DNA of 64,000 bases from Lytechinus pictus (GCF_037042905.1 NC_087260.1:22754001-22818000); one strand, 5' to 3'; shown: positions 1,226 to 41,478, numbered from the stretch's first letter. Program-made: numbers and translations. Notes: generated from the letters alone by a model not told the origin.

Positions 1226-2813
1226 TTATATTTTATACTTGTTCATTTCCTTGAAGTATGGCATTGAAGCGTTCGCAAGCTTCTTGACATCAGACTCCAA
1301 ACTGTGCACAGGTGTGGCTGGTCTAGGTGGCATAAACCCATCTGAATATTTCGCCGTGTCATAAAATGCTCCAAAGTCCTCCAATGATTTGTCGACCGTC
1401 ACTTTCCAGGTCTTGGTGACATCCGCAGAGGCATCCCATTGGAGAAGTGAATCGCTGTACGGAAGACCGGTCAGATGACAGAACTTCTTCAGCACCCCAG
1501 CGGGGTCGGCCAACAGATCATCGGTGTTGAGGACGATTGGGTTGGGATCCACGTTGTCTCGGATGTACTTCCAGATTTCAAACGCGCTGCTGAAAAACTC
1601 AGGAGGCTTTAAGAAGGGGTCGTTTTTCTCGAGGTTAAAGCTCTCCGGGTCCGCTGTCCACAAACCGAATTTCATTGTCTGGCAAACAATCGCCTTCCTA
1701 TAGGAGTCAAAGATTCTGTAGGGATCCCGGATAAGGAAGACGTGCTTGAACCCCTTTGGCAAGTATTGGCGGGATTTATCATCAGGAAAAATGAAGGCAC
1801 CTTCTTTGGCTAAGATGTACTTGCTCGTTGACGATTCCATTTTCCGTTTCACGTGACCGTACCTATAATGAAATAACAGAATTATTTATTTACATTCGAT
1901 TGGCAATGGCCATATTGACATGTATCAAGGTGAATTCCACAATGACAGATTGCATATTATTACGGATTTCTATACGAATAACGACGACTACTTCAATAAC
2001 TACCCACATGGGTGTGTATTACATTAATGATATGGGTGTGGAGGAGTGATTGAGATCTTGACTTTTCTTTGAATCTACGATATGATATCTGAATATTTTC
2101 TTAATTATTGTATCCAACTGTTTCTAATAAATTTACTCTAATCTGCAACGCCCAAAGTTTGACTCGGTGATGATTAGGATCAAAATTACCTTTATGGTGT
2201 CATGGTGGCTCAGTGGTATAGAGCGCCCGCCTCATGAACGGGAGGTCATTGGGTTCGATCCTTGACTGAGTCATACCAAAGACTTATAAAAATGGGACCT
2301 TCTTGTTAGGTGCTCGGCCTTTAGATTGGAGAAGGGTAATAATGACATTATGTTATGCAGGGCCCGCTGGTACAGCAGTTTCCTAACTGACGTGGCTACC
2401 CTGAGTATATATAACGTTATTATTATTATTATCATCATCATCGTTTAAAACGAATGCTACCAAAACAACCCAGAAAAGTCGAATACAAAATCAATCACTA
2501 TTTCGCAAATTCAAACAAAATGCGATAACTTTATTACTCACATTATCCTTTCTGGATCAACTTTGCTGCCCGCTAGACGCTCTAACTTAGTTGCTGCTTC
2601 CTGAGCCCTTTCTTCGTTTCCTTCATAGTCCATAGGAATCTCTTCCCCAGTAGTAAGCAGATACTCCTTTCTAGCAATATTGCAGGGGACAAAACATTCA
2701 AACCAAACTTCCATACCATCAATGGCGCTCAGACATTTACACAAAGCCGTCGATATGGTTCTTGGGACAACCCACAAGAAGAGGCGAACAGGTTTACTTT
2801 CAAAATCTGTCAT
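1226..2813 (-). CDS. Sulfotransferase-fold (Sulfotransfer_5-like) protein, array gene 1; exons 2813-2542 and 1862-1226; 302 aa
   Basis: Donor GTGAGT after 2542 and acceptor TATAG before 1862 give an in-frame phase-2 join (909 nt with stop). Motifs: LWVVPRTISTA (5'-PSB-like), HVFLIRDP...S (3'-PB-like), TDDLLADP..VLKKFC..TGL. Confidence 0.9.
2196..2431 (+). mobile_element. tRNA-derived SINE (central domain resembles MetaSINE) in the gene 1 intron
   Basis: A box TGGCTCAGTGG, B box GGTTCGATCC, then GAGTCATACCAAAGACTTATAAAAATGG and a (TTA)n tail. Confidence 0.75.
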
Positions 2814-3052
2814 TTTCAGTGATGTTGATCAAGCAACTTCTTGACTGTTCACTAGAAATGAATCTAACATTAGTTGCAGTAAGTTCTTAAACGAGATCAA
2901 AATCATAGGTGTATTAGTATACGGTTACAATGTTGACGGTTCCAGTTGACGACTTTGATTTATTTACATACCCTACCTCTTTCCGGGCCTCTTTCTAACA
3001 AACGTAAATGTCAAAATGAGTCGTATGAAGAATTGCGAGATTGAGTAAACAG

Positions 3053-4266
3053 CAGTAGTGTATCAAGGGAGGGGCGAGGGGGCACGTGCACCGGGCGCCA
3101 CTTTTAGGGGGCGCAATAAGGGAAAGGGGGCGCGAATAAAGAAAATGAAAAAATGAACAAAAATTGTCAACTTTTGTGTATACCTAAAAGTCAAACTTAA
3201 GGAATGAAGTCGCAGAAAAGGAAGACAACTGAAGGTGATTAATACCCCCGTCCTATGCTTTTACCATGGTAATGCAGTTTCGAACCTATGTAGAAAAATC
3301 TTGCATGTTTTTACCCAAGGTTGGATACACTGTATTCGTGCCAATTTTTTATCAGTGATATGCTTATTCTTTCCAAGAATTCCAACACACAGTCCTTAAA
3401 ATATTTCTTTTTCAAACGCATATCATATATTAGTTTTATCTCTAGCTGCTTGTAAGCATTTTGATATGTTAATGTTCATTTATTGTTACAAACAGTTCTG
3501 AAATACATCTTTTGTTTTCTTGTTTAATTAACAAAGACTTGTAATCACGCCCTGATTTAATAAGGTAGATAGTTAGATCTACACCCTCTTCATTAATTTT
3601 TACAAACAATCGTCTCTTTTTAGGAGAAGATATATTAACCAAATCATCCCGCGCTTCGCGCATGCATTTCACCGATGAGATACGTATGGGAAGTTCATGA
3701 ATTCATAAGAATACCCCTTACAATTGTCCCCTTTCAGGTAAGTATATCAACAATTTCAGCTCATCGCTCGTGCCTGCATTAATTGCTTAGTTAGACCCGC
3801 ATCGTAGGATTATTTCTCCCTAAAATGTCCCGATTTCAGGTCTAAATATCAATAATTTGCGGCTCGAGCTTCGCGTTCGCATTAATTGTTTAGAATATTC
3901 AGTCTTAAGATCTTACAAATGAATTTAAAAAACAGACTCACGCTTTGCCCTCGTATTAGGTCGATAAGTTATTTAATGAGATCCATGATTCCCTGTCATA
4001 ATTTTTTATCTATGATAAATGTTCCCTTTTCAAGTCAGAAGATCAATACTTTTCAGTTCGCACTTCGCGTTCGCATTCATTGTTAAATTAGATACGAATC
4101 ACATTTACGATAACAAAAAACCAACAATGACTATTCCGTCTTAACGTCTATTGAAAAAATATTTGCACCCGCATTGCTATTTATATGTATATTTATGTAT
4201 TACACTTTGAAAGGGGCGCGATTTTAGCACTTGCCCCGGGCACCGTTTGTCCTACATACGCCACTG
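3053..4266. mobile_element. Non-autonomous hAT-like DNA element about 240 bp upstream of gene 1
   Basis: Termini CAGTAGTGTA...TACGCCACTG; 8-bp TSD GTAAACAG at 3045-3052 and 4267-4274. Confidence 0.8.
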
Positions 4267-4590
4267 GTAAACAGAGCCCAATGTCATCATTTTCATATCG
4301 TAATGTGATCAAAGGTCGAAATATAATCATCAGGGGTGAAGCCAGTACATTCTCAAAAAGGGAGGGCAGACATCATATACTTTCTCACTTGAAACAATAC
4401 AGGAGTAGTAGAGTAACGCCCTAAAAACTCTGTTGTTAACACTCTTCCTCCTTTTTTTCTCTCTCTTTAGATATAACAAAAGTCAAGAGGGTCGCCGCCT
4501 GCTGCCATTCATCTAATAAGAAGTACATTCCTTTGTTGACCTACTGACTTCATCCCTCTCTATTTCATATGTGAACCGAAAAATGTTCGA

Positions 4591-7464: not shown

Positions 7465-10400
7465 TGTAGCATAATGAGTTATACCTTTAACATGTATTTC
7501 ATAGTTTAATCATAGAGGGCGATATTTTAGTTGTGATATGCTTTGAGATTATTGGAGAAGTACGTCAGTTCGCTGGGAGCTGCGGTGGCGTGCGGTTGTA
7601 AGATGTAAGCTCCGAATAAATCAAGTTGAACTGTATATTGAATATCTCCCAAGTTGCTTCATTTGTATGATTAAGGGTGAGTGAGCGGGTGATTCGGTGT
7701 ATTTCAGAGGAGCGAGAGAGTGTACCACGTTGCACAATATACTTTTGTGAGCAAATCCACCCCAAAAGAGATATATAAGTGAGGAGAAGCGTGGACCGGG
7801 TTCTGGAGACTGCGAGACGGCAGAACGCTACCCCGACAGAGCTCGGTTACGCCACACTGGTGGCCGCGGTGGGATTGAACAACGTGGTATTGGAAGCTCA
7901 TTCAACTTAGGCGCCTGTATTACAGGGAGCGCCACGTATATCTCCTATGAAGATCGCCAGGAGAGAGGGGTAAAGAGAGCGCCGAGGAAGGGTGCCTGGA
8001 GAGAGGCAAGAAGAGAGCGCCTATGCACGTTGGTGAATAGCACCCGGAGTGTGTGTGTTGGCGACAGCGTGGATAGCGCAGAGGAAGGGAGCCTGGAGAG
8101 AGGCAAGAAGAGAGCGCCGATGCACGTTGGTGAATAGCGCCCTGGGTGTGTGTGGCGGAGATAGTGCCGACACACGTTGGTGAATAGCGCCCTGGGTGTG
8201 TGTGGCGGAGATAGTGCCTACACACGTTGGTGAATGGCGCCTTGAATGTGTGTGGCGGAGGTAGCGTCTATGCACCCTGGTGAACAGCGCCCTGAGTGTG
8301 TGTGGCGGAGATAGCGCCTACACACGTTGGTGAATGGCGCCTTTGGTGTGTGTGTTGGCGACAGCGTGGAGAGCGCCGAGGAAGGGTGCCTGGAGAGAGG
8401 CAAGAAGAGAGCGCCTATGCACGTTGGTGAATAGCGCCCGGAGTGTCTGTGGCGGAGATAGTGCCTACACACGTTGGTGAATAGCGCCCTGAGTGTGCGT
8501 GGCGGAGGTAGCTCCTACACACGTTGGTGGATGGCGTATTGAGTGTGTGTGGCGGAGGTAGCGCCTATGCACGTTGGTGAATAGCGCCCTGAGTGTGTGT
8601 GGCGGAGATAGCGCCTACACACGTTGGTGAATAGCGCCCTGGGTGTGTGTGGCGGAGATAGTGCCTACACGCGTTGGTGAATAGCGCCTTGAGTGTGTGT
8701 GGCGGAGATAGCGCCTACACACGTTGGGGAATGGCGTATTGAGTGTGTGTGGCGGAGGTAGCGCCTATGCACGTTGGTGAATAGCGCCTCGAGTTTGTGT
8801 GGCGGAGATGGCGCCTTGAGTGTGTGTGGCGGAGATAGCGCCTATTGAGTCGGTGTGTAGACGACAGCGTGGATAGCGCCTATACATGTAAATGTATAGC
8901 GCCTACGACGAGTGGCTGTGAAGAATGGATCTGGAATTCCTTGCAGGATAAGTGCAGCGTGGAGATGGGGATCTCTGAACGTCGAAGAGAAGTACTTGTT
9001 GGATATGCAGATACTAGCAACGAGGGAACTGGAGCTGTCCTATGTTGGGAAGGAGCAAGTCATATCCTATGCTAGTGGGGTACTGCATTCAGAAAGCAGA
9101 GAAAAAACTACTATGGGGCTCAAAAGGAGTCATGGGCCATGGTAGTATTTCGGAGCTGCAACAGAACTTCTATGGGCGGAGATCAGGACGGATCATCGGG
9201 CACTTGGTTGGATCTTTGCAGACGCAAGGGTGGTTGCCGTGGAACTTGACATCAGCAATGAGCAGATACCAACAGAAAGAACCTTCGATCAGGTAGATCT
9301 TGGAAGCGGAGCATCAGTCAGTCGACCGGCCCGATTGGTCAACGGTGGCTTCAAAGTCTAGTGTGGAGAAGTCCTATTGGAGGATGCACAGCTGGAGATG
9401 AAGCAAGACATACTCTACAGGAAGTAGGAGTGTGACCAAGGTCGGAATGTAACATGGCATGTGATGTTGGTCTTCAGATAGATAGTTCGAAGGAATTGCG
9501 TTGGATGCACATCCGCTGATTGTTACGACAGGGTAACGCCTTGGCCTCCAAAGAAGTCTTTCATAGAGAGAGATCGAGATGATGAAAAGTAGTTCTAGAC
9601 ATGCACCTTGAAGAAACCCCCAAGAAGAAATCCTCTAGCACTTCAATCCGCAGAATAGATATTGGACATAACTTTCGCTATAACTTTGTGCCAGAAACAG
9701 TAAAAGACTCTGATGCATTTGATTTTGTATTCAAAATGTTGTTTTATGCCTTGATGTATGCTTTATATTTTTGCTTCCATGTTTTCCCTTTCCTATTTTC
9801 TAACCTTTCTTATGTAATTCTCATCTTGACATTTTCCTGATCTCAATGCTACTCTCTTTACTCTTTCTATCTATTTCTGTATATAGATTATTTTGGTTGT
9901 TAAGAACGGTACTTCCTTTATGTACAATGCCAATGTATATACCTGTATATTTTTAACATTGTTTTAATGTTTTCTATAATTCTTGGGAAGAGCGAGATAA
10001 CATTTAAAGAAATTCATGTTTATGCTTTGTTGTTAATACCTGGTCCGAGGACAGCCCAGACTTGGGGAGGGGCTGTGTAGCATAATGAGTTATACCTTTA
10101 ACATGTATTTCATAGTTTAATCATAGAGGGCGATATTTTAGTTGTGATATGCTTTGAGATTATTGGAGAAGTACGTCAGTTCGCTGGGAGCTGCGGTGGC
10201 GTGCGGTTGTAAGATGTAAGCTCCGAATAAATCAAGTTGAACTGTATATTGAATATCTCCCAAGTTGCTTCATTTGCATGATTAAGGGTGAGTGAGCGGG
10301 TGATTCGGTGTATTTCAGAGGAGCGAGAGAGTGTACCACGTTGCACAATATACTTTTGTGAGCAAATCCACCCCAAAAGAGATATATAAGTGAGGAGAAG

Positions 10401-10467: not shown

Positions 10468-11472
10468 ATATTATATTGTTGGCGTTATCATTATAATTTG
10501 ATATACATTATATCTTTGAAAGAAAAAAGCTATTACTTAAAATTATGTTAAAGTCCCCCGGTTTTCTCGATAGGGTGCGTTAATTTGACGTCCCTCCCTC
10601 AACCTACTCTTTCAAGAAATCCCCCTCCCCCTGTTTGGAAAGGGTGCAACCATCCACTCCACATTGTCGCTCCAAGAACGCAAGTCATTCAAACACACGG
10701 CGCTCTGATTCTATAGGGCCAGAATAATAGGCCTATACGTCTTTACTTCTGCTTATTATATTGTATATTTTCATTGCACAATGGCATTAGACGATCAGCA
10801 AAATTAAATGTGGGATTGAGTATCGTGGCACCCTATAAAGATATGAAATTTATTTCACACGGAAAATGAGAGGAAATGCAAATACTGATTTTATGCAGAA
10901 CCGCAACTCAGAATGTCCATCTGATAGGTGTAATTTCTATTTTTTTAAATGACAAGTTATTTGCATAATGCTAACGATGTAGGCCAACTAATAACATTTT
11001 CTTACTTATTTAAAGAAAGTCTAGTGCTTACTGATAAGTATTCATTGAAAAGACCTTCATGACTGTATAAAGGCGAGAAGAGGGTTAATTGACACTGCAA
11101 GGGTGTGACGGTAAGCATGTTAAGTGGGTATAGGGTTTAAGAAAGTAAAACAGGAAAAGGAGATCGAATCAGGGAAAAGGAACAAATCGAAAGATTCAAT
11201 ACTAAAGATGAACAATTAGATACATAAAAAGTAGTACTCAGAGGAGCGTTTTATCGCCATTTATATAATATGTTGTTAGATCTGACAACTTTCCTTGGTT
11301 ATGATTGAATAGGAAGTATAGGTATCTGACTGTTACCATGGTGACTGTCGGACAAAGCAGATTTGGTCGGCAAAAAATCCGACAAGTCCTTTCATGAAAC
11401 GCTTTCCAGGTGTGGTTCAACAGATGGCTTATTTAGCCCTCATTTTTATCTACGCATGTTTAGCTCGGTGAA

Positions 11473-12607
11473 TTATATTTTGAATTTGTTCATTTCCTCG
11501 AAGAAGTGCATTGAATCCTTTGCAAACTGCAAGGCATCTGGCGACAATCTGTCCTTGCTTATAGGAGGTTTAGGTGGTAGAAACTGGCTCGAGGTTACTG
11601 CTGTTCCGTACAAGTGAACCGCTTTTTCTACAGTGTCATCGCTGGCAACTTTCCAGGTCTTGGTGATGTCCGGAGCGGAATCCCAATGAAGTAGTGAATC
11701 ACTATAGGGAAGACCGGTCAGATGGCAGAACTTCTGAAGCACCTCAACGGGGTTGGCCAACAGATCATCAGTGTTGATGACAATTGGGTCAGGATCAGTG
11801 CTGTCACGAACGGATTTCCAGATAGAGTGCATCATAGAAAAGTACTCGTTAGAATTCCTCACCAATATGTCATCTTTCTTCAGGTCGAATTCCCTCTCGT
11901 CAGCAGCGTCACCTTTCCGAAGACCTACGCTGACAAGATGATTGTATAGTGCTTTTCTGTAGGAACTGAAAACTGTGTGTGGATCCCTGATGAGAAAGAC
12001 ATGTTTAAAGCCCTTTGGTAGATATTGCCAGACTTTATCATCTGACAAACTCACGACCCCCTCTTTTACCAGCTGGTACTTGCTGGTAGACGACTCCATC
12101 TTCGTCTTGATATTGCCATACCTAAAGAAAACAGTGTTTGAAACAAATGAAACATTATTGGCATTAAGTCCTCCATGCAATGCCAACAAATGTCAATGAA
12201 CCTTAACGAAAAAAAGTAATTAAATAGATAGAGAAAGTTCAAACAAGCTTGATTCTGAAATTTCATCCAAATCTAATGTAAATTAGGAAATTTATGACAT
12301 TTTAATTCGGTTTTTCGCCTCTAACTTACATGATTCTGTCGGCCTCTACTTTTCCACCCACAACACTACCCAAGGTCGATGCTGCTTGTTTCATCGTCTC
12401 TTCATTTCCTTCATACTCCATTGGTAAATCTTCACCAGTAAATAGAATATATTGTTCCTTTGCCATATGGCAGTATGTAAAACATTCAAACCAAACCTCC
12501 ATGCCGTCAATAAAACTGAGACATTTGGTAAGGGCGGTGGAGATCGTTCGTGGAACATGCCACAGGAAAATTCGCATATGTTGATGTTCCTCATCATTGT
12601 CCGCCAT
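11473..12607 (-). CDS. Sulfotransferase-fold protein, array gene 2; exons 12607-12330 and 12121-11473; 308 aa
   Basis: Donor GTAAGT, acceptor TTTAG, 208-bp phase-2 intron; motifs LWHVPRTISTA, HVFLIRDP, TDDLLANP. Confidence 0.9.
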
Positions 12608-14371: not shown

Positions 14372-15988
14372 TCATATTTTCATCTTATTCAGTTCTTCGT
14401 AATAGGGCATAGCTTGCTTGGATAGTCGGATAACATCTCGTGGCATCTTTTCTACTGGGACGGTTGGCTTTAGCGGGAGAAACCCGTCTGAGAAGACTGC
14501 CGTTTCAAAGAAGGCAACGGACAACTTGATGATGTCGTCGCTCGCTGTCTTCCAGGTCTTGGTGATGTCCGGAGAGGCATCCCAATGAAGTAGTGAATCA
14601 CTGTAGGGAAGACCGGTCAGGTGACAGAACTTCTTCAGTACCTTCGCAGGGTTGGCCAATAGATCGTTTGTGTTGATGACAATTGGGTCGGGGTCCAGGT
14701 TGTCTCGAACGTATTTCAAGAATTCTAAGGCTCCGCTGTAAAAATTGTTTGCCTTCGCGATTGGGTCATCGTATTCAATGTCGAATGCCTCTTCGTCGTC
14801 CGGATCACCCGTTCGGATACCAACGTTTGTGAGGTGTTTGTACATGGCTATTCTGTAGGAAGTATACAATCTATAAGGATCCCGAATGAAGAACACGTGT
14901 TTGAATCCGGATGGTAGGTATGGTCGAGTTGCCTTGTCTTCAAAAGCGAGATACCCTTCTTTGGCAAATATATACTTGCTAGTGGACCGTTCAATGTCCT
15001 TCTTCACGTAATCGTATCTAAACAAGAACAACGAAATATTGGTAAATTTATGTTAGTATTTCTAGTTTATATTACAATAATTTATGTCTTCAGCTCCCAG
15101 TGAAACAACCCCCCCCCCCCCTGTTCTGCTCTCACCCCCTTCCTTTTGTCGTTCTTTCCTTCTTTCTCATGTTCATATTCTTCATAGTATTTTGTCTGTT
15201 CCCTTTATTCCTCATCCTATTTCTTCTTATTTTTTTCCTAGCTCGTGCTGCCTTGAGGGCCGAATTAACGTATGCCTTGGCGTAATATCCGTCCTCTTTT
15301 GTCAGTCCACAAAATCAAAATGGCTCTTCTTCGTCATTTCATGCCTGATTTAAATTTAGTTTGCTTTTGTGATAAAACGATATAGGGGATTCCAACATTT
15401 TTAAATGCTTTTGAAACTCATTAAATATCTTTTACACAGAATGTTGAAATTTTGACTAAAAAATATCTAGCACAATTAAGAACAAATAGTGTTATATATT
15501 TATGTTGTTATAAGAAAAGATTTTGTATAATTCATACCAAAAAATTATATTTGGAAGAAGATAATTTTTTTTCTGAAATGAAATGAATTGAACCTGTGCT
15601 GCCCCCTCCAAAAAATAATAAAAGGGATATACAATCCTCCAAAGAATATAAGCTGTAAAATCTGCTTTGAAAAATACAACAATGAGGAATATAATTAAGA
15701 TCTTTTTCGTACTTACACCACTCGTTCTGGGACTAAGTCAGTTCCACTGAGACGCCCAAACAACTTGGTAGCTTCCCGTACTTTCTCTTCATTACCTTCA
15801 TATTCCAGGGGCATTTTATCACCCGTCCGATTCTCGTAATCATTCTTCACACTGTACGCTCGTGTAAACCGTTCAAACCATATTTCTATTCCTTCAACGC
15901 CACTCAGACACTTGCATAGAGCCGTCGAGATGGTTCTTGGCAAGACCCAAGCGATTATTTTAACCGGGGTTTGTTCGGAATCGGCCAT
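14372..15988 (-). CDS. Sulfotransferase-fold protein, array gene 3; exons 15988-15717 and 15017-14372; 305 aa
   Basis: Donor GTAAGT, acceptor TTTAG, in-frame join V|YDYV; motifs AWVLPRTISTA, HVFFIRDP. Confidence 0.9.
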
Positions 15989-21349: not shown

Positions 21350-23005
21350 TCATATTTTCATCTTGTTCAGTTCTTCGTAATAGGGCATAGCTTGCTTGGA
21401 TAGTCTGATAACATCCCGTGGCATCTTTTCTACTTGAACCGTTGGTTTTAGCGGGAGGAACCCGTCTGAGAAGACTGCCGTTTCAAAAAATGCATTGGAC
21501 AACTTGATGATGTCGTCGCTCGCTGTCTTCCAGGTCTTGGTGATGTCCGGAGAGGCATCCCAATGAAGTAGTGAATCACTGTAGGGAAGACCGGTCAGGT
21601 GACAGAACTTCTTCAGCACCTTCGCAGGGTTGGCCAACAGATCGTTTGTGTTGATGACAATTGGGTTGGGGTCCAGGTTGTCACGAATGTATTTCAAGAA
21701 TTCTAAGGTTCCGCTGTAAAAATTGTTTGCCTTCGCCATTGGGTCATCGTATTCCATGTCGAAGGCCTCCTCGTCGTCGGGATCCCCCGTCCGGATACCA
21801 ACGTTTGTGAGATGTTTGTACATGGCTATTCTGTAGGAAGTGTACAATCTGTAAGGATCCCGAATGAAGAACACGTGTTTGAATCCGGATGGTAGGTATG
21901 GTCGAGTTGCCTTGTCTTCAAAAGCGAGATACCCTTCTTTGGCAAATATATACTTGCTAGTGGATCGTTCAATGTTCTTCTTTACGTCTCCGTATCTAAA
22001 CAAGTACAATGAAAATATTGGTAGATGCATTTTGATACTCAATTAGTTCTGATTTTCTTTTGAAAGTATTTCATACATACTAATTACTATGTGTAATTTG
22101 ATATCCCCGGCAAACATTTTTTACCCCCCCCCCCCCCCCCGTTTCGCTCCCATCCCCTTCGATTTCTGATTCTTTACTTCTCCTTGCTTATGTTCACACA
22201 CTTTTCATACATTTTCAATCCCCCCCCCCCTTTTGTTTCGTTTCTCCTCGTTCATCCTACCATTATTTATTCTATCTTTTGTTTTATCCAGCCCTTCAAG
22301 CCGGAAAAGCTTATGCCACGGCCTAGCGTCCGTCGGCTTTCGTCAGTCCATAATTTCAAAATGCTCCTTTTTCGTCATTCAATTCATTTCACATTCAAAT
22401 ATTTTCTGCAGTGGGGGTCTAAATTTAGGATAAGATTAGACCAACCTTCGGAATCAATTAAAATTTGGATAATTGTTTAGGGTGAACATTCTCTGAAAAC
22501 CAAAAACGGTCAAAATGTCACCTCTATATCAGTATTCCAACTCAATAGTAAAAAAAATATCACAAGCAAAAAACAAAAGCCATCAAAACTCTGTGCGGGG
22601 GTGGGCACTCCTCCCCTTCCACCTCTTTAAAGAAATAATAGAAATAAAAACAATTCCCAAGAATATGAGCCAAAGACATATGCTTTGAGAATCTAACATT
22701 GAGGAATATAATTTGTCGAGTTTTTGTACTTACACCGCTTTTTGGGGGACTACGTCAGTACCAATGAGACGTCCAAACAACTTGGCAGCCTCCCGTACCT
22801 GCTCTTCACTGCCCTCATATTCCAGGGGCATTTTATTGCCAGTCTGACTCTCATACTCATTCTTCATAAAGTGCGCTCGTGTAAACCGTTCAAACCAAAT
22901 CTCGATTCCTTCAACGCCACTCAGACACTTGCATAGAGCCGTGGAGATGGTTCTTGGCAAGACCCAAGCGATTATTTTAACCGGGGCTTCTTCAGAATCG
23001 GCCAT
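21350..23005 (-). CDS. Sulfotransferase-fold protein, array gene 4; exons 23005-22734 and 21995-21350; 305 aa
   Basis: Canonical GT-AG 738-bp phase-2 intron; same motifs as gene 3. Confidence 0.9.
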
Positions 23006-27381: not shown

Positions 27382-30300
27382 TCATATTTTCATCTTGTTC
27401 AGTTCTTCGTAGTAGGGCATAGCTTGCTTGGCTAGTCTGATAACATCCCGTGGCATCTTTTCTACTTGAACCGTTGGTTTTAGCGGGAGGAACCCGTCTG
27501 AGAAGACTGCCGTTTCAAAAAATGCATTGGACAACTTGATGATGTCGTCGCTCGCTGTCTTCCAGGTCTTGGTGATGTCCGGAGAGGCATCCCAATGAAG
27601 TAGTGAATCACTGTAGGGAAGACCGGTCAGGTGACAGAACTTCTTCAGCACCTTCGCAGGGTTGGCCAACAGATCGTTTGTGTTGATGACAATTGGGTTG
27701 GGGTCCAGGTTGTCACGAATGTATTTCAAGAATTCTAAGATTGCGCTGTAGAACTCGTTAGCTTTCATGAGTGGGTCGTCATATTCAATGTCGAATGCCT
27801 CTTCGTCGTCCGGATCACCCGTTCGGATACCAACGTTTGCAAGATGTTTGTACAAGGCTATTTTGTAGGAAGTGTACAATCTGTAAGGATCCCGAATGAA
27901 GAACACGTGTTTGAATCCGGATGGTAGGTATGGTCGAGTTGCCTTGTCTTCAAAAGCGATATACCCTTCTTTTGCAAATATATACTTGCTACTGGATCGT
28001 TCAATGTTCTTCTTTACGTCTCCGTATCTAAACAAGTACAATGAAAATATTGGTAGATGCATTTTGATACTCAATTAGTTCTGATTTTCTTTTGAAAGTA
28101 TTTTATAAATACTAATTACTATGTGTAATTTGATATCCCCGACAAACAATTCTTACCCCCCTCCCCCGTTTCGCTCCCATCCCCTTCGATTTCTGATTCT
28201 TTACTTCTCCTTGCTTATGTTCACACACTTTTCATACATTTTCAATCCCCCCCCCCTTTGTTTCGTTTCTCCTCGTTCATCCTACCATGATTTATTCTTA
28301 TCTTTTGTTTTATCCAGCCCTTCAAGCCGGAAAAGCTTATGCCACGGCCTAGCGTCCGTCGGCTTTCGTCAGTCCATAATTTCAAAATGCTCCTTTTTCG
28401 GTTCCATGACAATTGCTCCGACGACATTTGCTCCGCCGACAATTGCTACGCAAAATACGACAACTGCTCCGCCGACAATTGCTCCGGACAGTTGCTCCGT
28501 CGACACTTGCTCCGCCGATATGTGCTCCGTCGACACTTGCTCCGCCGATATTTGCTCCGCCGATATTTGCTCCGCCGACATCTGCTCCGCCGACATCTGC
28601 TCCGCCGAAAATTGCTCCGCCGACAATTGCTCCGCCGATAATTGCTCCGCCGACATCTGCTCCGATTATACGACAATTGCTCCGCCGATATTTGCTCCGC
28701 CGACATCTGCTCCGATTATACGACAATTGCTCCGCCGACAATTGCTCCGCCGACATCTGCTCCGCCGTAAATTGCTCCGATAATGCGACAATTATTTTTT
28801 TTTTTTTAATTCGTACTTTCATACGCATGACAATTGTAGCACAGGCTGAAGGCGTCAATTTACCATGGAGCATAGCTCCATGAATTTACAAGGTAAACTT
28901 AAACTATGCTTGCATGATATATTATACAAATAGCGAATAGGCATGAGTGCGATGGTGCGAGATTTCGCATGAGGTGAAAGCAAGATGCTCTATTCAACGA
29001 GGCGTTAGCCGAGTTGAATAGAGTGTTTCTTTCTTTCACCGAATGCGAAATCTCGCACCATTGCACGAATAAGAATATTCGCTATTTGTGTTGTACAACG
29101 CCTCGGAGTTTAGCGAATTTATGAAAAAACAAAGAGTTTTTCCTGCAGTAATCTATGAAAAGGGAGCAAAAATATGGAAAGCGAAAAGCAAAATCCCACA
29201 AGCGAACACCTCGGGCAGCATTGCGCATTTAGCCTGCAGGCTATACGCGTATTAATTGCACCTGCATTTTTACTGAGCGCAATGAATTGAATCGTATTGT
29301 GACGTCACCTCCTAAAGCCGTGCAACGGTACATTTTGGACGGTACATTTTGGATGGTACGTCTTTTGTGCAGCGGTACGAATGTTTGACATTCAGCCTCC
29401 CATTTGCTCGCGTACAACAAGCTAAGTAGGCGTTGTACAATACATGTCATACACAGGGGCCGCGGAACGGTTTTCAAAGTGAGGGCTGAGTCAAAAGTGG
29501 GGGGGCTGTCCATGATAAAATCACAATCATATGGTCATTCTTACGTTTTTTGTACACGGCTTTGGAAAATTGGGGGGGGGGGGGGCTAAAGCCCCCCGGC
29601 TCCGCGGCCCCTGATACATGCATATAGAAAGAAATAGAAAAAAAGGGTAAGCACAAAGGAGGGATAGATATTCTTAATGCTTATTCATGGTGGGGGGAGC
29701 ATTTGTGTAAGTTTTATTACGTGCCTGGCGATTAAAATGAAGAAAAAAAAACGCGTTTTCATGTAAATATTATAACCATATAGCCAATTAGACATATCCC
29801 ATTCTTAGCGTCAAAATCGCTCAGACTGGCGAAATATGCTCCGAAGTGGAGCCATTTGCTCCAGGTGAAATTCAACGGTATACCCCACCTTATTTTGTCG
29901 AAAACCTGTACTGTAGTCACGCAAACATGACCAAGACATTCAGTAAGTAAAGAAAATACCAACTTGTGAAAGGCTACATGTCGTGTCACCTTCTCGGCAC
30001 ACCCCTCCACTCTGGTTTCCATATCCTCTCGTACACACAGTGCTCTCAGTCTGGTCTCCACATCCACATCATGTCATACACACCGTAAGTTTTTAGATTA
30101 TGATAATACTGTATATAATAGTGAGTTGGTTTTTGTTTTATGTTGATCATGATTGTTTTCTTCACTGATAGAAAAAGGATAATTAATTTTTTTTTAATAA
30201 TCCAAAAATAAAATCCATATGTTCTGTTTTATATAGTTATTAGTCAAGATTACTTTAGTTCGCATTAGTTCTCATTGTTTATACGTTCTAATTCTTATGC

Positions 30301-33300
30301 ATTATTCCGATTGATATTGTACTTTAAATTTGACTATGTATTGTTACTTTGATTTTGTTGTGCTTTGTGAACGGAAAATGAATAAATCTTAATCTAAATC
30401 TAAATATGGTCCGCCAATAGTCGAATTATATTCATTATGATGTTATAATGTAAGTAACAATTTGTTGTTGATGGGGGATATAATTTTACACGTATAGTTT
30501 CAAAAAATAAAAAAAATCAATCAAACAAGATTTTCTTCTATAAATGATATTCCTTCATGTGTATATGGCCGCCTATGTATTTTCCAAGAATGAACTATAT
30601 GAGAAGAAAACGTGTGTTCATGTACTTATTATCATTATCATTGTACCACCATTATCATCATCAGCATCATTATCAGCATCTTCATCATCACCATCATTAT
30701 CATTGTCGTCGTCGTTTTGCTTATGCGGAAATCAAACAAAAATGATTGTGAAAAGGGTTATGGAGGGAAAGAGAGAGAGAGAAAGAGGGGGAGTGAGTGA
30801 GAGCTTGAGGAAAAAAGGAGGTGTATGACTTATTATTTCTGAATATCGCGATTTCTGTTTATTCATGGGATTGAAATAGAAGGATAAACTTAACAAGTTC
30901 TTGTCATTATCATTTTTTTATTTGATTTGAGAGTAGTGTCATTTTCAAAACCTTTCTTAGCAGCAAGGAATACTGAATCTCATTTCCACAATGTGCATCT
31001 GAATGCACAATGCCTGTGTTTCTAACATGTACCCAAATTACCAAATTTAAAGAACACATGTTAAGATCTAATGAATCACCAAAATAATCCGTTCTATCAT
31101 GATCAGCAGGCATAACAGCCTATATACTCTTCAATACTTCAATTACAGTTTGTCGAAAGAAATAACACAAAGAAAAGGAAATATATAGAATTGTAACTCT
31201 GGTAAATATATCAAAAATATTCAATTAACGCATCGTGCTCTCATTTCTTTTACGAGATATCTCCCCCCCCCCCCCCGAGATATGCTTCATGTTTACAATT
31301 TAAAAAAGGCGTATAAATGTCCCCTTTCCATGTCAATAACAGCTCGTGCTTTGTGCTCGCATTATAAATTCAGTGAGATGCGTATTGGGTTTCATGAATT
31401 TGTAACTATATTATTGCTGGTATATATATTATTGTCTTTTAAAATTAACATTATTTGTTTAGACGTAATGAGAGAGATACATACATATATTCATTTATTA
31501 TAATATATTTATATTGTCGCTATTGCACAGAATAGAACAAAAATACAACCGAAGTCTAGTTTTATAGTAACTCACCAGTAGCGTAATGAGCCAACAAAAA
31601 AAAAATGGAGGGGGCGAGACAAGGATGACATTTATTTTCCTTTCCTTTATTCTTTTTTTTTTGGTAGGGAGAATGGGGGGATCCGTGACCCCTAGCACGC
31701 CCCTCCCCCATCTGTACGCCAGTGATGATCATACTTTCGTTTGAAACAAATTGAAAGAAAAAAAGTGCAAGGGTAGATAAGGCCGAAGACGTAAATAAAA
31801 ATTATTGATAAAAATATTAATAATTATAATACTGATAAATATACAATAAATCAAGCGGTCACCAATAAAAATAAACAACGTGAAAGAACAGAACGAGAAA
31901 GAGAGAGAGAGAGAGAGCCCGCGCGAATGTATGGTGTATAAGTTGCTGGAAAGCAGAAGAGATATTGTGTCCAGCACCCCCCCCCCCCCCCAAATTCTCT
32001 CCCCGCTCAAGACCGGAGTGAAACCAATGATAATAATATATGAACAAAAATCCAGATTCACAATTTCAATGGGGAGTGTGTCATTCCCCTTCTCCGTTAC
32101 AATTTGTCAAGTGGCAGCGGCAGGGAGAACAATTTGTTTTGTTTTTTAAGCAGAAAGCTGTGATGATAGGGGGAGAATAAAATAAATAAAACATTAACGA
32201 ATAACAAGAACAAAACAACGACAAAACAATTTGTATCTGGATGAATTTTTTATCATTTAACATAGACCAACTTGGAGAAATAAGATGTTCATGCAATTGT
32301 CGTATAATCGGAGCAGATGTCGGCGGAGCAAATATCGGCGGAGCAATTGTCGCGGAGCAATTGCCGTATAATCGGAGCAGATGTCGGCGGAGCAATTGTC
32401 GGCGGAGCAATTTTCGGCGGAGCAGATGTCGGCGGAGCACATGTCAGCGGAGCAAATATCGGCGGAGCAAATAACGGCGGAGCAAGTGTCGACGGAGCAC
32501 ATATCGTCGGAGCAAGTGTCGACGGAGCAACTGTCGGCGGAGCAATTGTCCGGAGCAATTGTCGGCGGAGCAATTGTCTTATTTTGCGTAGCAATTGTCG
32601 GTGGAGCAGATGTCGGCGGAGCAATTGTCGGGTCACCCCTTTTTCGTCATTCAATTCATTTCACATTCAAATATTTTCTGCAGTGGGGGTCTAAATTTAG
32701 GATAAAATTAGACCAACGTTCGGAATCAATTAAAATTTGGATAATTGTTATGGGTGAACATTCTCTGAAAACCAAAAACGGTCAAAATGTCACCTCTATA
32801 TCAGTATTCCAACTCAACAGTAAAAAAAAATATGACAAGCAGAAAACAAAAGCCATCAAAACTCTGTGCGAGGGTGGGCTCTCCTCCCCGTCCACCTCTT
32901 TAAAGTAGAACTATATTGAAAATCGTAAAAATGGAGAATCATATATCAAATTAAAGGAGAAAATAAGGAGAACACGATGGTGTAAATCATTTATCATGGA
33001 GACCGATGGAACTCAGTTAATTGATAGTTTAAAGTTCTCTCTCTGAATGCTTCAAACACGCAGAATTACGTCCGCGAAATTGGGGATTTTTTATGACGTC
33101 ACTTTCTGTACGAGAGGCGTGATTGGCTCTCCAACGTAAAGCTCCACTTGCATGCAGAACCTGTTGCGAGGGTGCGTTTTCTTCACATTGTCACTGAATA
33201 CTTCGATCCCGAAATGAAAGAAAACCCAGAATTTTATCTAGATTTGGATTTTCAAATTGATGATTATGAAGATGAAGAGAATGATGATGAAGTTTCTAGC

Positions 33301-35283
33301 TCTAGAAAAACAAAGTGACGTGGATAGAGGTATACATTAGGGGAATTACGCCGGTGATTATGAGTCGGACAATTCAACTTGCATGCCGATTCGCTACCAA
33401 CACATGCAGCTGATGGCTGCTCCGCGGGTCAAATCCATGAAAATGAATTCCATCACGACCACATCCAGACAGAGTCTCTTTCTTCTATTAACAACATAAT
33501 GAGAATGAAAATAATGATATAACTGTACTTACAAACAAGTGAATATATCCGAACCTAGGCTGAAGGTAAATCAACTCAAGGAATAACAGCAGACGATATG
33601 CACCGACGATGAATTTCACGTGGCTGGGAGATTGTCACTCGTTCTGTTAGATAAAATTTCTATCTCATTATTTTGACTAAATTACGAAACTCGGAGGATT
33701 AGTATTCTACATAAAAATTAAGTAACACCTGGTACTATTTTTTGAATTACGATAAAACCTTTTTGAAGCAAAGAAAATGAGGTAAATTAAAATTAGATAT
33801 AAATTAAGATCATCCGCCTAGCTCGCATTCGATTGTAAACAATCAGCAAGGCGAGCACATAGAGTTGGATAAAGCTACGCTCCAACTCTATGGGCGAGCA
33901 AGCCACTGAACTGAAAATACGTATTTTCAGTTCAGTGGAGCAAGCTGGCCATGTGCTTTTGGTTGTTTGTTTACAATCGCATGCGGCTAAGTGGATGATC
34001 CTTTATATCTTATTTTAATTTACCTCAATTTCTTTGCTTCAAAAATATTTTATCGTAATTCAAAAAATAGTACCAGGTGTTACTTAATTATTATGTAGAA
34101 TACTAATTATCCGAGTTTCGTAATTTAGTCAAAATAATGAGATATAAATTTTATCTAACAGAACGAGTGACAATCTATTCCAGCCACGTGAAATTCATCG
34201 TCGGTGCATATCGTCTGCTGCTATTTCTTGAGTTGATTTACCTTCAGCCTAGGTTCGGATATATTCACTTATTTGTAAGTACAGTTATTTTATTATTTTC
34301 CTTCTCATTATGTTGTTGATAGAGGAAAGAGACTCTGTCTGGATGTGGTCATGCTGCATGGAATTCATTTTCATGGATTTGACCCGCGGTGCAGCTAGCA
34401 GCTGCATGCGTTGGTAGCGAATCGGCTTGCAAGTTGAATTGTCTTACTCATCATCACCGGCGTAATTCCCTTAATTTACCACCATCCACGTCACTTTGTT
34501 TTTCTAGAGTTAGAAACTTTATCATCATTCTCTTCATCTTCATAATCATCAATTTGAAAATCCAAATCTAGATAAATTTCTGGGTTTTCTTTCATTTCAT
34601 GATCGAAGTATTCAGTGTCAGTGTGGAGAAAACGTACCCTCGCAACAGGTTTTGCATGCAAGTGGAGCTTGACGTGGGAGAGCCAATCACGCCTCTCGTA
34701 CAGACAGTGACGTCATCAAATTCGAGTCAATTCAGAGACCGATGCGAGGCATATTTCGGAGAGGCATTTTAGCGCTTTTTAATTGGCGATTTCCACCTTA
34801 TGTATTATTTTCGTTATTTTTGAATGACCTAATGGTAATCCTCACATCATTACCTTTCCACTGATATATAATAAGGCCATATTCATAATCAATATATTTC
34901 TCTTTTAAAGAAATAATAGAAATAAAAACAATTCCCAAGAATATGAGCCAGACAGATGCTTTTTAAAATCTAACATTGAGGAATATAATTTGTCGAGTTT
35001 TTTGTACTTACACAGCTCTTTGGGGGACTACGTCAGTACCAATGAGACGTCCAAACAACTTGGCAGCTTCCCGTACCTGCTCTTCACTGCCCTCATATTC
35101 CAGGGGCATTTTATTGCCAGTCTGACTCTCATACTCATTCTTCATAAAGTGCGCTCGTGTAAACCGTTCAAACCAAATCTCGATTCCTTCAACGCCACTC
35201 AGACACTTGCATAGAGCCGTGGAGATGGTTCTTGGCAAGACCCAAGCGATTATTTTAACCGGGGTGTCTTCAGAATCGGCCAT
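27382..35283 (-). CDS. Sulfotransferase-fold protein, array gene 5; exons 35283-35012 and 28027-27382; 305 aa; intron expanded to about 7 kb
   Basis: Both exons open and splice sites intact. The intron equals the gene 4 intron plus two large insertions (28400-32637 and 32904-34904). Confidence 0.85.
28400..32637. mobile_element. Foldback (TU-like) element, 4.2 kb, with terminal inverted arrays of a 15-bp repeat
   Basis: Arrays of TGCTCCGCCGACAAT variants at 28408-28780 and inverted at 32293-32630. GG...CC termini; 8-bp TSD CCTTTTTC (28392-28399, 32638-32645). Empty site visible in the gene 4 intron at about 22365. Confidence 0.88.
28920..29442. mobile_element. Asymmetric hairpin element nested in the foldback interior (possibly Crypton-derived)
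   Basis: Imperfect ~170-bp hairpin at 28925-29095 with loop GAGGCGTTAGCCGAG. The right end GGCGTTGTACAATA is complementary to both the left terminus and internal GTTGTACAACGCC. Confidence 0.5.
32904..34904. mobile_element. 2.0-kb TTAA-target DNA element (Kolobok-like), mostly one long palindrome
   Basis: TSD TTAA (32900-32903, 34905-34908); degenerate TIR AGTAGAACTATATTGA / AAGAGAAATATATTGA. Inverted arms at about 33093-33845 and 33965-34717. Empty site CCTCTTTAAAGAAAT in the gene 4 intron. Confidence 0.85.
33858..33937. mobile_element. Two ultra-short TIR-only insertions (35 bp at 33858-33892; 34 bp at 33904-33937), each with an 8-bp TSD
   Basis: GGCGAGCA-[CATAGAGTTGGA...TCCAACTCTATG]-GGCGAGCA and GAGCAAGC-[CACTGAACTGAAAATAC|GTATTTTCAGTTCAGTG]-GAGCAAGC. 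Confidence 0.8.
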
Positions 35284-37668: not shown

Positions 37669-38317
37669 CTATAGTGGTTTAATAATTTCCAACCCCCCTT
37701 ATAAATTCCGTAACAATATATTATGTATATGTATATGTGTGTGTGTGTGTGATGGGGTGTGTGTGTGCGTGGGTGGATGGGTGTGTGCTGAGGCGTGAAG
37801 GTGTGTGTGAGTGTTCCGTGGGTGTGTGCATTTACACGAATCGTTGATTTTTTTGTAAATAATTTTATATTTTGTTGTTATTGTTGGGTTGTTTTGTACT
37901 AAATCATTCTAAATTAATTTAACATACTTAGTACTCAAGCGAGCGCGCACACTCACTCACCTTGCACTCAAACACCAATCACAAACACTTTTTGAAAATC
38001 ATACTCTTTCCATTAATGCAGTTTTACATTACAAAATTATGTAAAATACTGCATATCCTTTAGTTATAAACCCAATATACAATACAATAAACATGACAAT
38101 AAATACGAACAATTTAATAATTTTCTTCAATATAAAACTTCATAGCACTTTGACAAATAATTTTACTGTAGCATTTCATAAACACTCAAACACGTTTAAA
38201 AAGAAATTATACTATTGGATGGGAGCCTGGCATTCCTTGTATGCTTGCGTACTGTAAACGGCTGCGTCCTTTGGAGAGCATCAGGAGCAGGGGCGTTATA
38301 CGGTAATGTATACGTGA

Positions 38318-39440
38318 TTCAATTCAATTCAATGTTTATTTTTAAAAAAAACATGAGTCGCAGCCAAATCAATGGCTGAATTGGTCATGTATTAAAAGTA
38401 CAAACAATTAAAAGACTCGTTCCATTTTTCAAAAATTAAAAAAAAATAATAATCTTGGTAAAAACTTACAAAATGAATATGTATGTAGTAAATAAGGCAA
38501 GAATACTTGGGCAATGAAAATAAGTAGACATAAGATAATGAGGAAGTGGTAAATTAAGGAGAATAAAACAAAATAAGCAAGTTTTAAAAGATCATTAAAG
38601 TATGTGGATATTCAATAGAAGTGTTACTTTCCTATTAATTAAATAATATAAATTTTTATTGCAAGTAGGCATATTTAAGGTATTGCTTTCAAATGAGTCT
38701 TTATTCAGGAGATTTGAGAAATATGATATGGGGCTATTGCGGAATCGGATTGAAGGAGGTTACCATGTATTAAATGTTGGATGTTTGGTTGAAGACGTTG
38801 CGAAATCCAGGCTGAGTTTCTCCCTTCTGAATTAAAGAATGAGATGATAGGCAAGCACTGGCATAATAATCTGTGTAGTTTTGGCCCAACATGATTCTAC
38901 AAGCTCTTTTTTTTATTTGCTCTAAACTTTTTAAATTTTTCTGTGTCAGTCCACCATCAAAAACTTGAGTGCAGTATTCCATAACAGGACCATATAGGAT
39001 ATTTTGAGAATGTCAGAACATTTTGAAAGGTTCAACTTAATGTGGTTTAGGGAGCTCCACTGATCTATATATATTGGACATTGTAGAAATGTTAATTCGG
39101 TGTATATATTTTTTACGACATTCCAACAAAGTAAGATCGTCTTCATATTTATATAGACTGATATATATTCACTAGCATCGTTGATCATAATCAGGAAGAG
39201 AATAGAACCTAATTTAGTGCCTTTGGGGTACGCCACCGTGATTGGGTAATTAGACAAAGTGCCTGATATTTTTTTACACGGTTAACGATTCTTCCCCAAA
39301 AACTTATAATCATTATATGACATTGATTATTTAATGATGCAAGATCGTACATTGAGTTTGATCAACTTTCTAACGATGTTATGATCCAGCCTATCAAAAG
39401 CCTCGGTGAAATTAGTAAACACAACCGTGGATAGACTCTT
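38318..39440 (-). mobile_element. Degenerate L2/CR1-like LINE 3' fragment
   Basis: Frameshifted RT remnants PKGTKLGSILFLIMIND and LEQIKKRACRIMLG; AATAAA followed by (TTGAA)n tail at about 38318-38340. Confidence 0.7.
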
Positions 39441-39543
39441 GCTATGTTATATGTGAAAACTGTGTATTATCATTATTGTATATATTTTAAGTCAACTTTT
39501 TTTTCATTGCTCATCGTTTTAAATGATAGTAGTTTTACCTCTT

Positions 39544-40564
39544 TCATATCTTAAACCCATTTATGTTTTCAAAATGTGGGATGGAGACCTTTGCCAGTTT
39601 TCTGACATCTGGTGCAAGTTTGTCTATGGGAATTGCCGGTTTTGGCGGAAGAAATCTACTGGAGAACAGTGCTGTTTTAAAAAACGCATTGGCCAACTTG
39701 ATGACATTGTCGCTAACCCTTATCCAGTTCTTGATCACATCTGGAGAAGCGTCCCAATGAAGAGAATCGCTGTAAGGAAGTCCGGTAAGATCGCAGAACT
39801 TCTGAAGCACATCAGCGGGGTTGGTCAACAGATCATCAGTGTTGATGACGATTGGGTTGGGATCCAAGTTGTCCCGGACGTAATTCCAAAGCTCTGTTAT
39901 TCCGCTGTAGAATTCGTTCGCGTTCATGACAGGGTCACCGTGACCGATGTCGAAGGCGCCTTCGTCGGCGGCATCCCCTGAGCGGATTCCAACATTTGTC
40001 AGGTGCTGATACATCGCTTTCATGTAGGATGTGAACAGTTTATGAGGTTCCCGGATGAGAAAGACATGCTTGAATCGTTTTGGTAGGTACTGCCGTCATT
40101 TCTTATCCGGAAAAGCCATCTACCCGTTCTTGACAAAGATATACTTACTGGTGGATGCCTCAAGTTCTTTCTGCACGTTATGGTATCTATAAGGAACCAA
40201 ACCAAAAAGGGCGTATTTAAATTGGTGATTGTGTTTCTCCCACGCTCAGGATGCTCACGCTACCACGTCATCATTTCTTGTTTCGTGTACTGAAACTTGT
40301 GCTATGCTACCTAATTTTTTCTTCCTAGTTTCTTGTCATTTCTACTTCCTTTTAGTTTATTTTCCTTTATTTTATTATTCGTTATCATTTTATGCCATGT
40401 CTGCTACTTCCAACTTGTACTAGTTCTTCTTCCTAAGAGTAGTTAGCTAGAGTTGCCAATGTTTTGAGTATCTACGCTACAAGACACTTGCATAAAGCGG
40501 TTGAGATTGTTCGTGGCATGATCCAAGCCATGATCCGTACAGGAGAACTTTGACAATCAGCCAT
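39544..40564 (-). pseudogene. Array member 6, pseudogene
   Basis: Exon 1 reads MADCQSSPVRIMAWIMPRTISTALCKCL, then homology is lost and a stop follows. Exon 2 from 40186 has in-frame TAG (KNG*) and TGA (DKK*) and a one-codon deletion (DSL-HW). Confidence 0.88.

Positions 40565-41432: not shown

Positions 41433-41478
<46 letters not shown>

Follow-up and report, generated by a model that had tools for sequence, protein, structure and literature searches.

A tandem array of Sulfotransfer_5 (PF19798) genes in the sea urchin Lytechinus pictus, with a putative TPST/CurM-type catalytic arrangement

The genes repeated along one locus of Lytechinus pictus raise the question of what enzymes they encode, and whether their departure from the classical sulfotransferase (SULT) signature points to a new chemistry. 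The DNA analysed was a 64,000-nucleotide stretch of L. pictus chromosome (the window; positions are counted from its first base), for which a first-pass annotation had described five intact paralogs and one pseudogene in one orientation with a shared phase-2 intron; this description was borne out by tblastn, splice models and RefSeq identity. The tblastn scan of the window located six exon-1/exon-2 pairs, every one of them on the minus strand; five are intact two-exon genes encoding 302–308 aa and one is a pseudogene. In the intact copies, exon 1 stops two bases into a codon and is followed by GTGAGT or GTAAGT, and AG precedes exon 2; this phase-2 GT..AG intron falls at the same residue (~91) in all five. 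The spliced models (A–E) are each 100% identical, residue for residue, to a RefSeq L. pictus protein.

Copy A (1226..2813, minus strand, as are all the following) is composed of exon 1 (2813..2542), a 679-bp intron and exon 2 (1862..1226); its 302-aa product is P0235 (LOC129279294), and orthologs are present in L. variegatus and S. purpuratus. Copy B (11473..12607) has exon 1 at 12607..12330 and exon 2 at 12121..11473, separated by a 208-bp intron, and encodes 308 aa (P0012; LOC129279694). The other three intact copies each encode 305 aa: copy C (14372..15988; exon 1, 15988..15717; intron, 699 bp; exon 2, 15017..14372; P0001, LOC129279111), copy D (21350..23005; exon 1, 23005..22734; intron, 738 bp; exon 2, 21995..21350; P0231, LOC135156963) and copy E (27382..35283; exon 1, 35283..35012; intron, 6,984 bp; exon 2, 28027..27382; P0232, LOC129279576). 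Comparison with the D intron revealed that the intron of copy E consists of the D intron plus two insertions (~28401–32637 and ~32906–34903), both with inverted-repeat structure. We considered whether exon 1 and exon 2 of copy E are separate, orphaned gene fragments and rejected this, since the intron of copy E is colinear with that of D apart from these insertions and RefSeq holds a single-gene model with an identical protein. The pseudogene, copy F (39544..40564), retains an exon-1 remnant (40564..~40481), in which homology is lost after 28 codons, and an exon 2 (~40200..39544) that is interrupted by two in-frame stops and has lost one codon; a genome search likewise marked stops within the match. 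A decayed, A-like seventh copy lies 7.3–8.5 kb to the left of window base 1 (G000:C16:22745517-22746658), indicating that the array extends past the window edge. In all, tandemly arrayed paralogs make up the locus: six lie in the window, five of them intact and one dead, and a further decayed copy sits just outside.

Spliced transcripts, which the first-pass annotation had proposed to look for, were represented by a contig in run X1, only tentatively taken to be RNA, that is spliced exactly at the predicted copy C intron, with 15017 joined to 15717. No reads or contigs were found on the copy B exons in the four runs mapped, and no reads on B or C exons in the raw RNA runs X10–X12, of which ~6% was sampled, a result that is uninformative on tissue-specific expression. 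Ka/Ks was 0.20–0.30 among copies C, D and E, with D versus E showing 95% amino acid identity, a Ks of 0.083 and a Ka/Ks of 0.30; judged from these coding-sequence comparisons, the three copies are under purifying selection. The suggestion that the array evolves by birth and death is supported by copy F, the decayed seventh copy, the orthologs and the recent paralogs.

Family membership was assessed with the whole-protein HMM score, against a gathering cut-off of 23.2 bits for Pfam PF19798 (Sulfotransfer_5). All five proteins tested exceeded this cut-off (35–51 bits): P0001 (copy C) scored 42.1, P0012 (copy B) 37.8 and P0010, a 97% identical stand-in for the copy A product, 41.5 bits, and the two L. 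pictus paralogs from outside the window (P0006 and P0013) gave scores of 51.3 and 35.3 bits; the scores are modest, and the best-scoring stretch lies mostly in the C-terminal third. The SULT family PF00685 (Sulfotransfer_1), in contrast, was absent or reached only 15.8 bits in a single paralog, against a cut-off of 22. All database relatives carried a precomputed PF19798 match. Neither NCBIfam nor a single-sequence PDB search gave anything meaningful, the best PDB match being a DUF (E 0.67). The family profile, compared with PDB sequences, matched CurM ST (E 2e-11) and OLS ST (E 5.7e-7).

The AF2 model of the copy C protein (pLDDT 95.2, pTM 0.92) begins its fold at residue 9 with the first core strand, and a Foldseek search against the PDB returned sulfotransferases for all of the top 20 matches, the best being CurM ST (4gbm, E 4e-7), followed by TPSTs and OLS ST. 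The proteins have, according to this model, the sulfotransferase alpha/beta fold with a central parallel sheet, as the first-pass annotation had anticipated. Peak 19-residue Kyte-Doolittle hydropathy was 0.9–1.4 across copies A–E, with no transmembrane or signal-like segment and no hydrophobic N-terminus, in agreement with the earlier view that a signal peptide and membrane anchor are lacking. The genes encode soluble enzymes of ~35 kDa in the Sulfotransfer_5 branch of the sulfotransferase superfamily, probably located in the cytosol. These features bear on the alternative that the array sulfates macromolecules, either protein tyrosines in the manner of TPST or glycans, instead of small molecules. 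We regard this as quite unlikely: the sulfotransferases known to act on tyrosines or glycans reside in the Golgi and carry a membrane anchor or signal, whereas the array proteins have no hydrophobic segment; the differences from TPST, with which 226–241 residues align at an rmsd of 4.6–5.7 Å, fall outside the PAPS core; and a family of ~75–80 fast-diversifying paralogs fits small-molecule diversity better.

The motifs quoted in the first-pass annotation recur in all five intact copies, as W-x-x-P-R-T-I-S-T-A, W-F-E-x-F, K-E-G, H-V-F-x-I-R-D-P...S and N-T-x-D-L-L-A-x-P. The K-x-H catalytic His and the P-K-S-G-T-T loop are missing; K-E-G replaces K-T-H, and P-R-T-I-S-T is found instead of the loop. 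In the AF2 model, the 5'-PSB loop (P17-R18-T19-I20-S21-T22) follows strand 9–15 and precedes helix 21–28, and the 3'-PB motif is placed at the junction of strand 130–135 and helix 138–156. Alignment of the family profile with PDB sequences matched the 5'-PSB loop to PRSGST of CurM ST, with R18 on its Arg, E39 to the Glu of CurM 'PPELH', which we take to be the general base, K110 to the Lys of CurM 'DKSP', and R136/S144 to CurM VRHPYSVIES. Analysis of 49 relatives revealed conservation of R18 and R136 in all 49, S144 in 48, K110 in 47, E39 and H131 in 45, and S21 and T22 in 44; position 111 was acidic (D/E) in 49/49. The spacing from R18 to E39 is 21 residues, equal to that from Arg78 to Glu99 of TPST2, whose triad is Arg78/Glu99/Lys158 and whose alanine mutants at these residues lose activity (PMC10951654). 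The residue equivalences to CurM and TPST derive from the profile-sequence alignment and motif spacing, and on this footing the best reading of the catalytic arrangement is the known TPST/CurM type, with R18, E39, K110 and R136/S144 in putative individual roles. The active site, previously described as non-canonical, is so only in comparison with cytosolic SULT1/2, since the same arrangement, with Arg in a P-R-S/T-x-S-T loop, Glu as base ~21 residues further on and Lys on the following core strand, is established in TPST2, and the residues align with those of CurM.

An active site of the TPST/CurM type is best read as serving ordinary PAPS-dependent transfer of sulfate, with no new chemistry. 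The opposing proposal, raised in the first-pass annotation, is that the altered motifs (Ile for the PSB Gly, K-E-G for K-T-H) signal a kinase-like or other group transfer; a further alternative is that the proteins bind ligands without catalysis. P-loop kinases have a fold related to that of sulfotransferases, and Foldseek did return weak matches to shikimate and adenylate kinases (E 4e-3 to 6e-3); moreover, none of the PF19798 members has a known activity, and the acidic residue 111 of all 49 relatives perhaps has a role unexplained by the TPST model. However, the array proteins lack a Walker-type G-x-x-x-x-G-K-[ST] loop, R136...S144 as the PAPS-specific 3'-phosphate motif varies little or not at all, the sulfotransferase matches are far stronger than the kinase matches, and the Gly position of the P-R-S-G-S-T loop is merely variable among PF19798 relatives (L/I/V/C/T). 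Purifying selection on catalytic positions argues against a pseudo-enzyme. Little thus speaks for a different chemistry, to which we assign a low probability. The Glu of K-E-G had been put forward as the base; the likely base is instead E39 in F-E-x-F, although the acidic residue 111 may have its own role.

The best explanation, which we consider probable, is that these Sulfotransfer_5 enzymes transfer the sulfo group of PAPS to the hydroxyl of a small acceptor, using a TPST/CurM-type layout; the use of PAPS and the small-molecule nature of the acceptor are the parts that we infer. In such a mechanism, the strand-loop-helix of W-x-x-P-R18-T-I-S21-T22 would hold the 5'-phosphosulfate, with Arg18 replacing the SULT lysine, and the strand and helix of H131-V-F-x-I-R136-D-P...S144 would bind the 3'-phosphate. 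Glu39 in W-F-E-x-F would act as the general base that deprotonates the acceptor, and Lys110, followed by the always-acidic residue 111, would stabilise the transition state. The acceptor pocket may be formed from variable helical segments (residues ~46–90 and 151–180) that differ among paralogs. Steroid, phenolic or aliphatic alcohols are plausible acceptors, because sulfated forms are typical of echinoderms, as reported for steroids and phenolics (PMC6780655).

A simple conjugation role is not guaranteed, since CurM ST, the closest characterised sequence relative, acts on a carrier-protein-bound substrate and uses sulfate as a leaving group. The array enzymes might likewise sulfonate a hydroxyl only to activate it, so that what is finally made, whether an alkene, a ring or a dehydrated compound, is free of sulfate, and precedents for this mode exist in CurM ST of curacin biosynthesis and LGS1 of strigolactone biosynthesis. 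CurM and OLS ST are, however, polyketide synthase domains located beside a thioesterase, whereas the urchin genes stand alone with no such partner in the window, and identity to them is only ~14–16%. Many stable sulfate esters accumulate in echinoderms (PMC6780655), which fits plain conjugation. We therefore consider an activating role very improbable, and plain transfer to a small acceptor remains the preferred reading.

Beyond the window, PF19798 comprises ~75–80 loci in the L. pictus genome, which places it among the larger enzyme families of this genome, and it reaches hemichordates and all five echinoderm classes; among the database matches, brittle star, Diadema and acorn worm each contributed tens of distinct proteins. 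Literature on PF19798 or Sulfotransfer_5 yielded lists and counts only, and our searches found no characterised member, activity or animal substrate, consistent with the earlier statement that no animal substrate is established; no echinoderm papers on these proteins were found, including under the 'BCAT-like' name. Sulfated steroids, saponins and phenolics are a well-known feature of echinoderms, and no characterised enzyme for these sulfation steps was found in our searches. The large shared family, the apparently intact TPST/CurM-type catalytic set and the purifying selection make these genes testable candidates for sulfation. It is possible, and we offer it tentatively, that the ambulacrarian expansion of PF19798 supplies the long-sought enzymes for sulfated steroids, saponins, phenolic or quinone pigments and aliphatic sulfates, with arrays specialised by acceptor class. 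If true, the array would belong to a toolkit, encoded by the animals themselves, for chemical defence or metabolite handling, parallel to and independent of the canonical SULTs. The array and its family offer concrete candidates for the sulfation of small molecules in animals by enzymes other than the classical SULTs, and L. pictus is tractable for knock-outs of candidate genes. The active site is best assigned to an already known type; the match of the motifs to a known mechanistic class corrects the idea of a new chemistry.

Comparison with known systems separates the array from characterised animal enzymes of the Sulfotransfer_1 type. Pigment cells of sea urchins have a canonical SULT, the product of sult1c2 (formerly Sult), for which the published probe encodes the G-D-W-K-N-H-F-T motif, and Renilla coelenterazine sulfotransferase (Coel-ST) was identified as Sulfotransfer_1; both belong to PF00685, not PF19798. 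The earlier proposal of quinone pigment sulfation finds no support here, the known pigment-cell enzyme being SULT1-type and of another family, and a link to bioluminescence was rejected since the Renilla enzyme allows no functional transfer to the PF19798 array.

TPSTs are Golgi membrane proteins acting on peptides. TPST1 and TPST2 (PDB 5WRJ, 3AP1-3) gave the best structural Z (13–14) to the copy C model and share with the urchin proteins the Arg-type 5'-PSB loop, the 21-residue Arg...Glu spacing and the Lys (K110; catalytic in TPST); unlike TPSTs, the urchin proteins have no Golgi membrane anchor, and they have no detectable sequence homology to TPST, which was not found among sequence-search matches even at E 10. 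CurM and OLS ST (PDB 4GBM, 4GOX) are bacterial polyketide synthase domains that act on carrier-protein-bound beta-hydroxyacyl chains, creating a leaving group, whereas the urchin proteins are products of free-standing animal genes; directly after the Lys, CurM has Ser, whereas the urchin family invariably has Asp or Glu. The N-terminal domain of plant 'branched-chain-amino-acid aminotransferase-like protein 1/2' and stand-alone bacterial and fungal proteins belong to the same PF19798 family, and clusters from plants, green algae, bacteria and fungi had predicted structures that matched the model (TM 0.67–0.71 by query); this agrees with the resemblance noted in the first-pass annotation, and some echinoderm members carry RefSeq names taken from the plant BCAT-like proteins. 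The urchin proteins stand alone at 300 aa, with no fused aminotransferase or rhodanese domain, and compared with the bacterial proteins (~237 aa) they have ~40 extra residues in helical segments. A further difference is the massive expansion of these proteins in ambulacrarians.

A tblastn search that used both exons of a single copy as queries revealed six exon-1/exon-2 pairs in the window (G000:C16:22754001-22818000), all on the minus strand: five intact genes (A–E) and a pseudogene (F). In A–E, exon 1 stops two bases into a codon, before GTGAGT or GTAAGT, and exon 2 is preceded by a pyrimidine-rich tract and AG; thus the intron is in phase 2 at the same residue in all five copies. The spliced products (A, 302 aa; B, 308 aa; C, D and E, 305 aa) were each identical to one RefSeq protein model, and copy C exon 2, used as a protein query, matched the Lytechinus pictus RefSeq protein LOC129279111 at 100% identity. 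In F, exon 1 is reduced to 28 codons, and exon 2 contains two in-frame stops and a one-codon deletion. A seventh, A-like and decayed copy was located at G000:C16:22745517-22746658, 7.3–8.5 kb left of window base 1; its aa identity is ~92% over residues 89–257, exon 1 survives only as residues 1–48, and the frame is broken near residue 256. A search of the next 40 kb upstream gave no additional array copy. The tandem array proposed in the first-pass annotation is confirmed and is slightly larger than described there. An older 201-aa RefSeq model (P0014, LOC129279573) is similar to F (39544–40200), with an unrelated tail at its end and Ser at the position of the second in-frame stop of F; this model may derive from a different haplotype or assembly version of the decayed copy.

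The 6,984-bp intron of copy E is interrupted, relative to the colinear 738-bp D intron, by two insertions of ~4.2 kb (28401–32637) and ~2.0 kb (32906–34903). The first is flanked by 278-nt inverted arms (28408–28685 and 32352–32629) built of a 15-nt minisatellite, and the second is a near-perfect palindrome with arms at ~33089–33803 and 34002–34720 and a loop of 198 nt; both have inverted-repeat architecture and look like foldback-type elements. Between A and B, a tandem array of a 50-bp unit (8012–8816; 14 copies, 79% matches) is nested in a 297-bp higher-order period, within a GC-rich stretch (GC 0.48–0.50) at 6–10 kb of the window. Directly right of the gene array, at 41076–41646, AT-rich low-complexity DNA contains N runs of 175, 136 and 134 bases.

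Comparison of the young paralogs C, D and E (Nei-Gojobori) showed Ka/Ks of 0.20 for C–D (Ks 0.22), 0.24 for C–E (Ks 0.24) and 0.30 for D–E (Ks 0.083), indicating purifying selection after recent duplication. The maximum-likelihood tree divided the array into three older lineages: A, B and C/D/E. S. purpuratus genes grouped with A and with C/D/E at moderate to full support, whereas B joined its S. purpuratus gene at no more than 86/84, and the tree left the fork uniting the three lineages unresolved. D and E formed a sister pair, for which the sampled rows included no L. variegatus counterpart. These lineages, the young D/E pair and the two decayed copies amount to birth-and-death evolution, as had been proposed from the sequence. 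Nucleotide identity of C to D and E was 87.5–87.9% in exon 1 (15717–15988) and 92.6–94.7% in exon 2 (14372–15017), whereas the order was reversed between D and E (98.2% in exon 1, 95.7% in exon 2); this uneven divergence between exons points to gene conversion or mosaic duplication among the array members.

For transcripts, four runs were compared with the B and C region (11300–16100). A 1,162-nt contig from one sequencing run (X1), 98.7% identical to the window, spans 14067–15017 and then 15717–15926; the segment that it omits coincides exactly with the 699-bp intron predicted for C, and it carries ~300 nt of 3′ UTR. Because the contig is precisely spliced, mRNA is the best explanation, although the assignment of X1 to a library type is a guess. 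No reads from B or C exons were found in three raw RNA-seq runs sampled at ~6%; within the compared region, their reads were confined to interspersed repeats. This coverage, at 11300–11460 and 13393–13714 only, was rich in variant bases, irregular joins and loose ends, a picture typical of interspersed repeats that are transcribed and not of the array locus. Expression was observed for copy C alone, in one sample. The array is real, partly expressed, under purifying selection and turning over.

Searched in six frames, the complete L. pictus assembly yielded 133 matching pieces, including ~75–80 C-terminal-exon loci (a lower bound for the family), mostly stop-free, and these loci lie on all but one of the 20 numbered chromosome-scale contigs. 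Further tandem clusters were found, for example, on C18 (7.18–7.25 Mb), C5 (39.5 Mb), C14 (14.7 Mb), C4 (5.7 Mb) and C8 (22.4 Mb); the C14 cluster (14.72–14.77 Mb) has an additional intron near residue 157. Four members carry the N- and C-terminal matches in a single open frame of 331–447 aa (G000:C4:5716296-5717369, C5:4320246-4320953, C3:74269632-74270417 and C4:31644884-31645717). These appear intronless and may be retrocopies, and retrocopying could account for the spread of the family to almost every chromosome. Relatives were found in sea urchins (Lytechinus, Strongylocentrotus, Diadema), brittle stars (Amphiura, dozens of proteins), starfish (Asterias, Acanthaster, Patiria), sea cucumbers (Holothuria), crinoids (Anneissia, Antedon) and the hemichordate Ptychodera flava (many proteins), under the RefSeq names 'uncharacterized protein' or 'branched-chain-amino-acid aminotransferase-like protein 1/2'. 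When 1.84 billion representatives were searched exhaustively with a single sequence, only 479 matches reached E <= 1e-3.

The full-length proteins scored 35–51 bits against Pfam PF19798 (Sulfotransfer_5; cut-off, 23.2 bits), with PF13469 and PF00685 below threshold. The AlphaFold2 model of C, which rests on a 49-sequence family alignment, was very confident (pLDDT 95.2, pTM 0.92), and its structural Z was highest for TPST1 (14.0), CurM ST (13.8), OLS ST (13.7) and TPST2 (13.2–13.4), followed by heparan-sulfate and glycopeptide sulfotransferases (10.5–11.6) and cytosolic SULTs (about 10). The closest predicted structures in the ESM Atlas belong to an echinoderm PF19798 cluster (TM 0.81); plant BCAT-like fusion proteins (TM 0.70), green-algal rhodanese fusions and Bacteroidota stand-alone proteins were also among the nearest, and a feature search added cnidarian and Mucoromycota PF19798 clusters. 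The family, the fold and the likeness to plant, bacterial and fungal proteins thus agree with the first-pass annotation, as does the lack of a signal peptide or membrane anchor: the highest 19-residue Kyte-Doolittle score was 0.9–1.4, without a hydrophobic segment. The first core strand of the model starts at residue 9, and the RefSeq models share the start Met with ours. The simplest reading is a soluble enzyme, the location of which we infer to be presumably cytosolic.

Literature on PF19798 contained lists or counts only, and no characterised member was found in it. Two functional leads failed: the sea urchin pigment-cell sulfotransferase gene is sult1c2, a canonical SULT, which leaves the link to quinone pigments drawn earlier unsupported, and the Renilla coelenterazine sulfotransferase belongs to Sulfotransfer_1. 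Since sulfated steroids and phenolics are described as typical of echinoderms (PMC6780655), small-molecule O-sulfation is a reasonable putative assignment. Its size, ambulacrarian range and orphan status make the family a worthwhile target for biochemistry.

The family profile, compared with all PDB sequences, matched CurM ST (E 2e-11) and OLS ST (E 5.7e-7). In the profile alignment, P-R18-S/T-x-S-T, W-F-E39-P/x, K110 and I-R136-x-P...S144 pair with P-R-S-G-S-T, P-P-E-L-H, D-K-S-P and V-R-H-P-Y-S-V-I-E-S of CurM ST, respectively. Among 49 relatives covering all echinoderm classes, R18 and R136 were kept in all 49, S144 in 48, K110 in 47, E39 and H131 in 45 each, and S21 and T22 in 44 each. The least conserved segments, residues 46–90 and 151–180, are helical or loop and flank the conserved core; judging from sulfotransferases generally, they would form the acceptor site. 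The signature had been called non-canonical, which holds relative to SULT1/2 but not overall, since at the sequence level it matches the Arg/Glu/Lys (TPST/CurM-type) class; the different chemistry suggested with it is accordingly unsupported. Ile at the PSB Gly position, taken as a special sign, falls at a position that is merely variable in the family (L/I/V/C/T). The Glu of K-E-G had been put forward as the base; E39, inside the F-E-x-F motif, would be the more probable candidate and is the most probable putative catalytic base. Position 111 is, however, Asp or Glu in 49/49 relatives, so the K-E-G Glu may contribute to the placement of K110 or the acceptor. TPST2 uses Arg78, Glu99 and Lys158 for catalysis and loses activity when they are mutated to alanine (PMC10951654); the Arg-to-Glu spacing of 21 residues equals that from R18 to E39 in the array proteins. 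The array belongs to a sulfotransferase family that is recognised by Pfam, though still an orphan, and that has a TPST/CurM-type catalytic set; nothing in it is categorically new.
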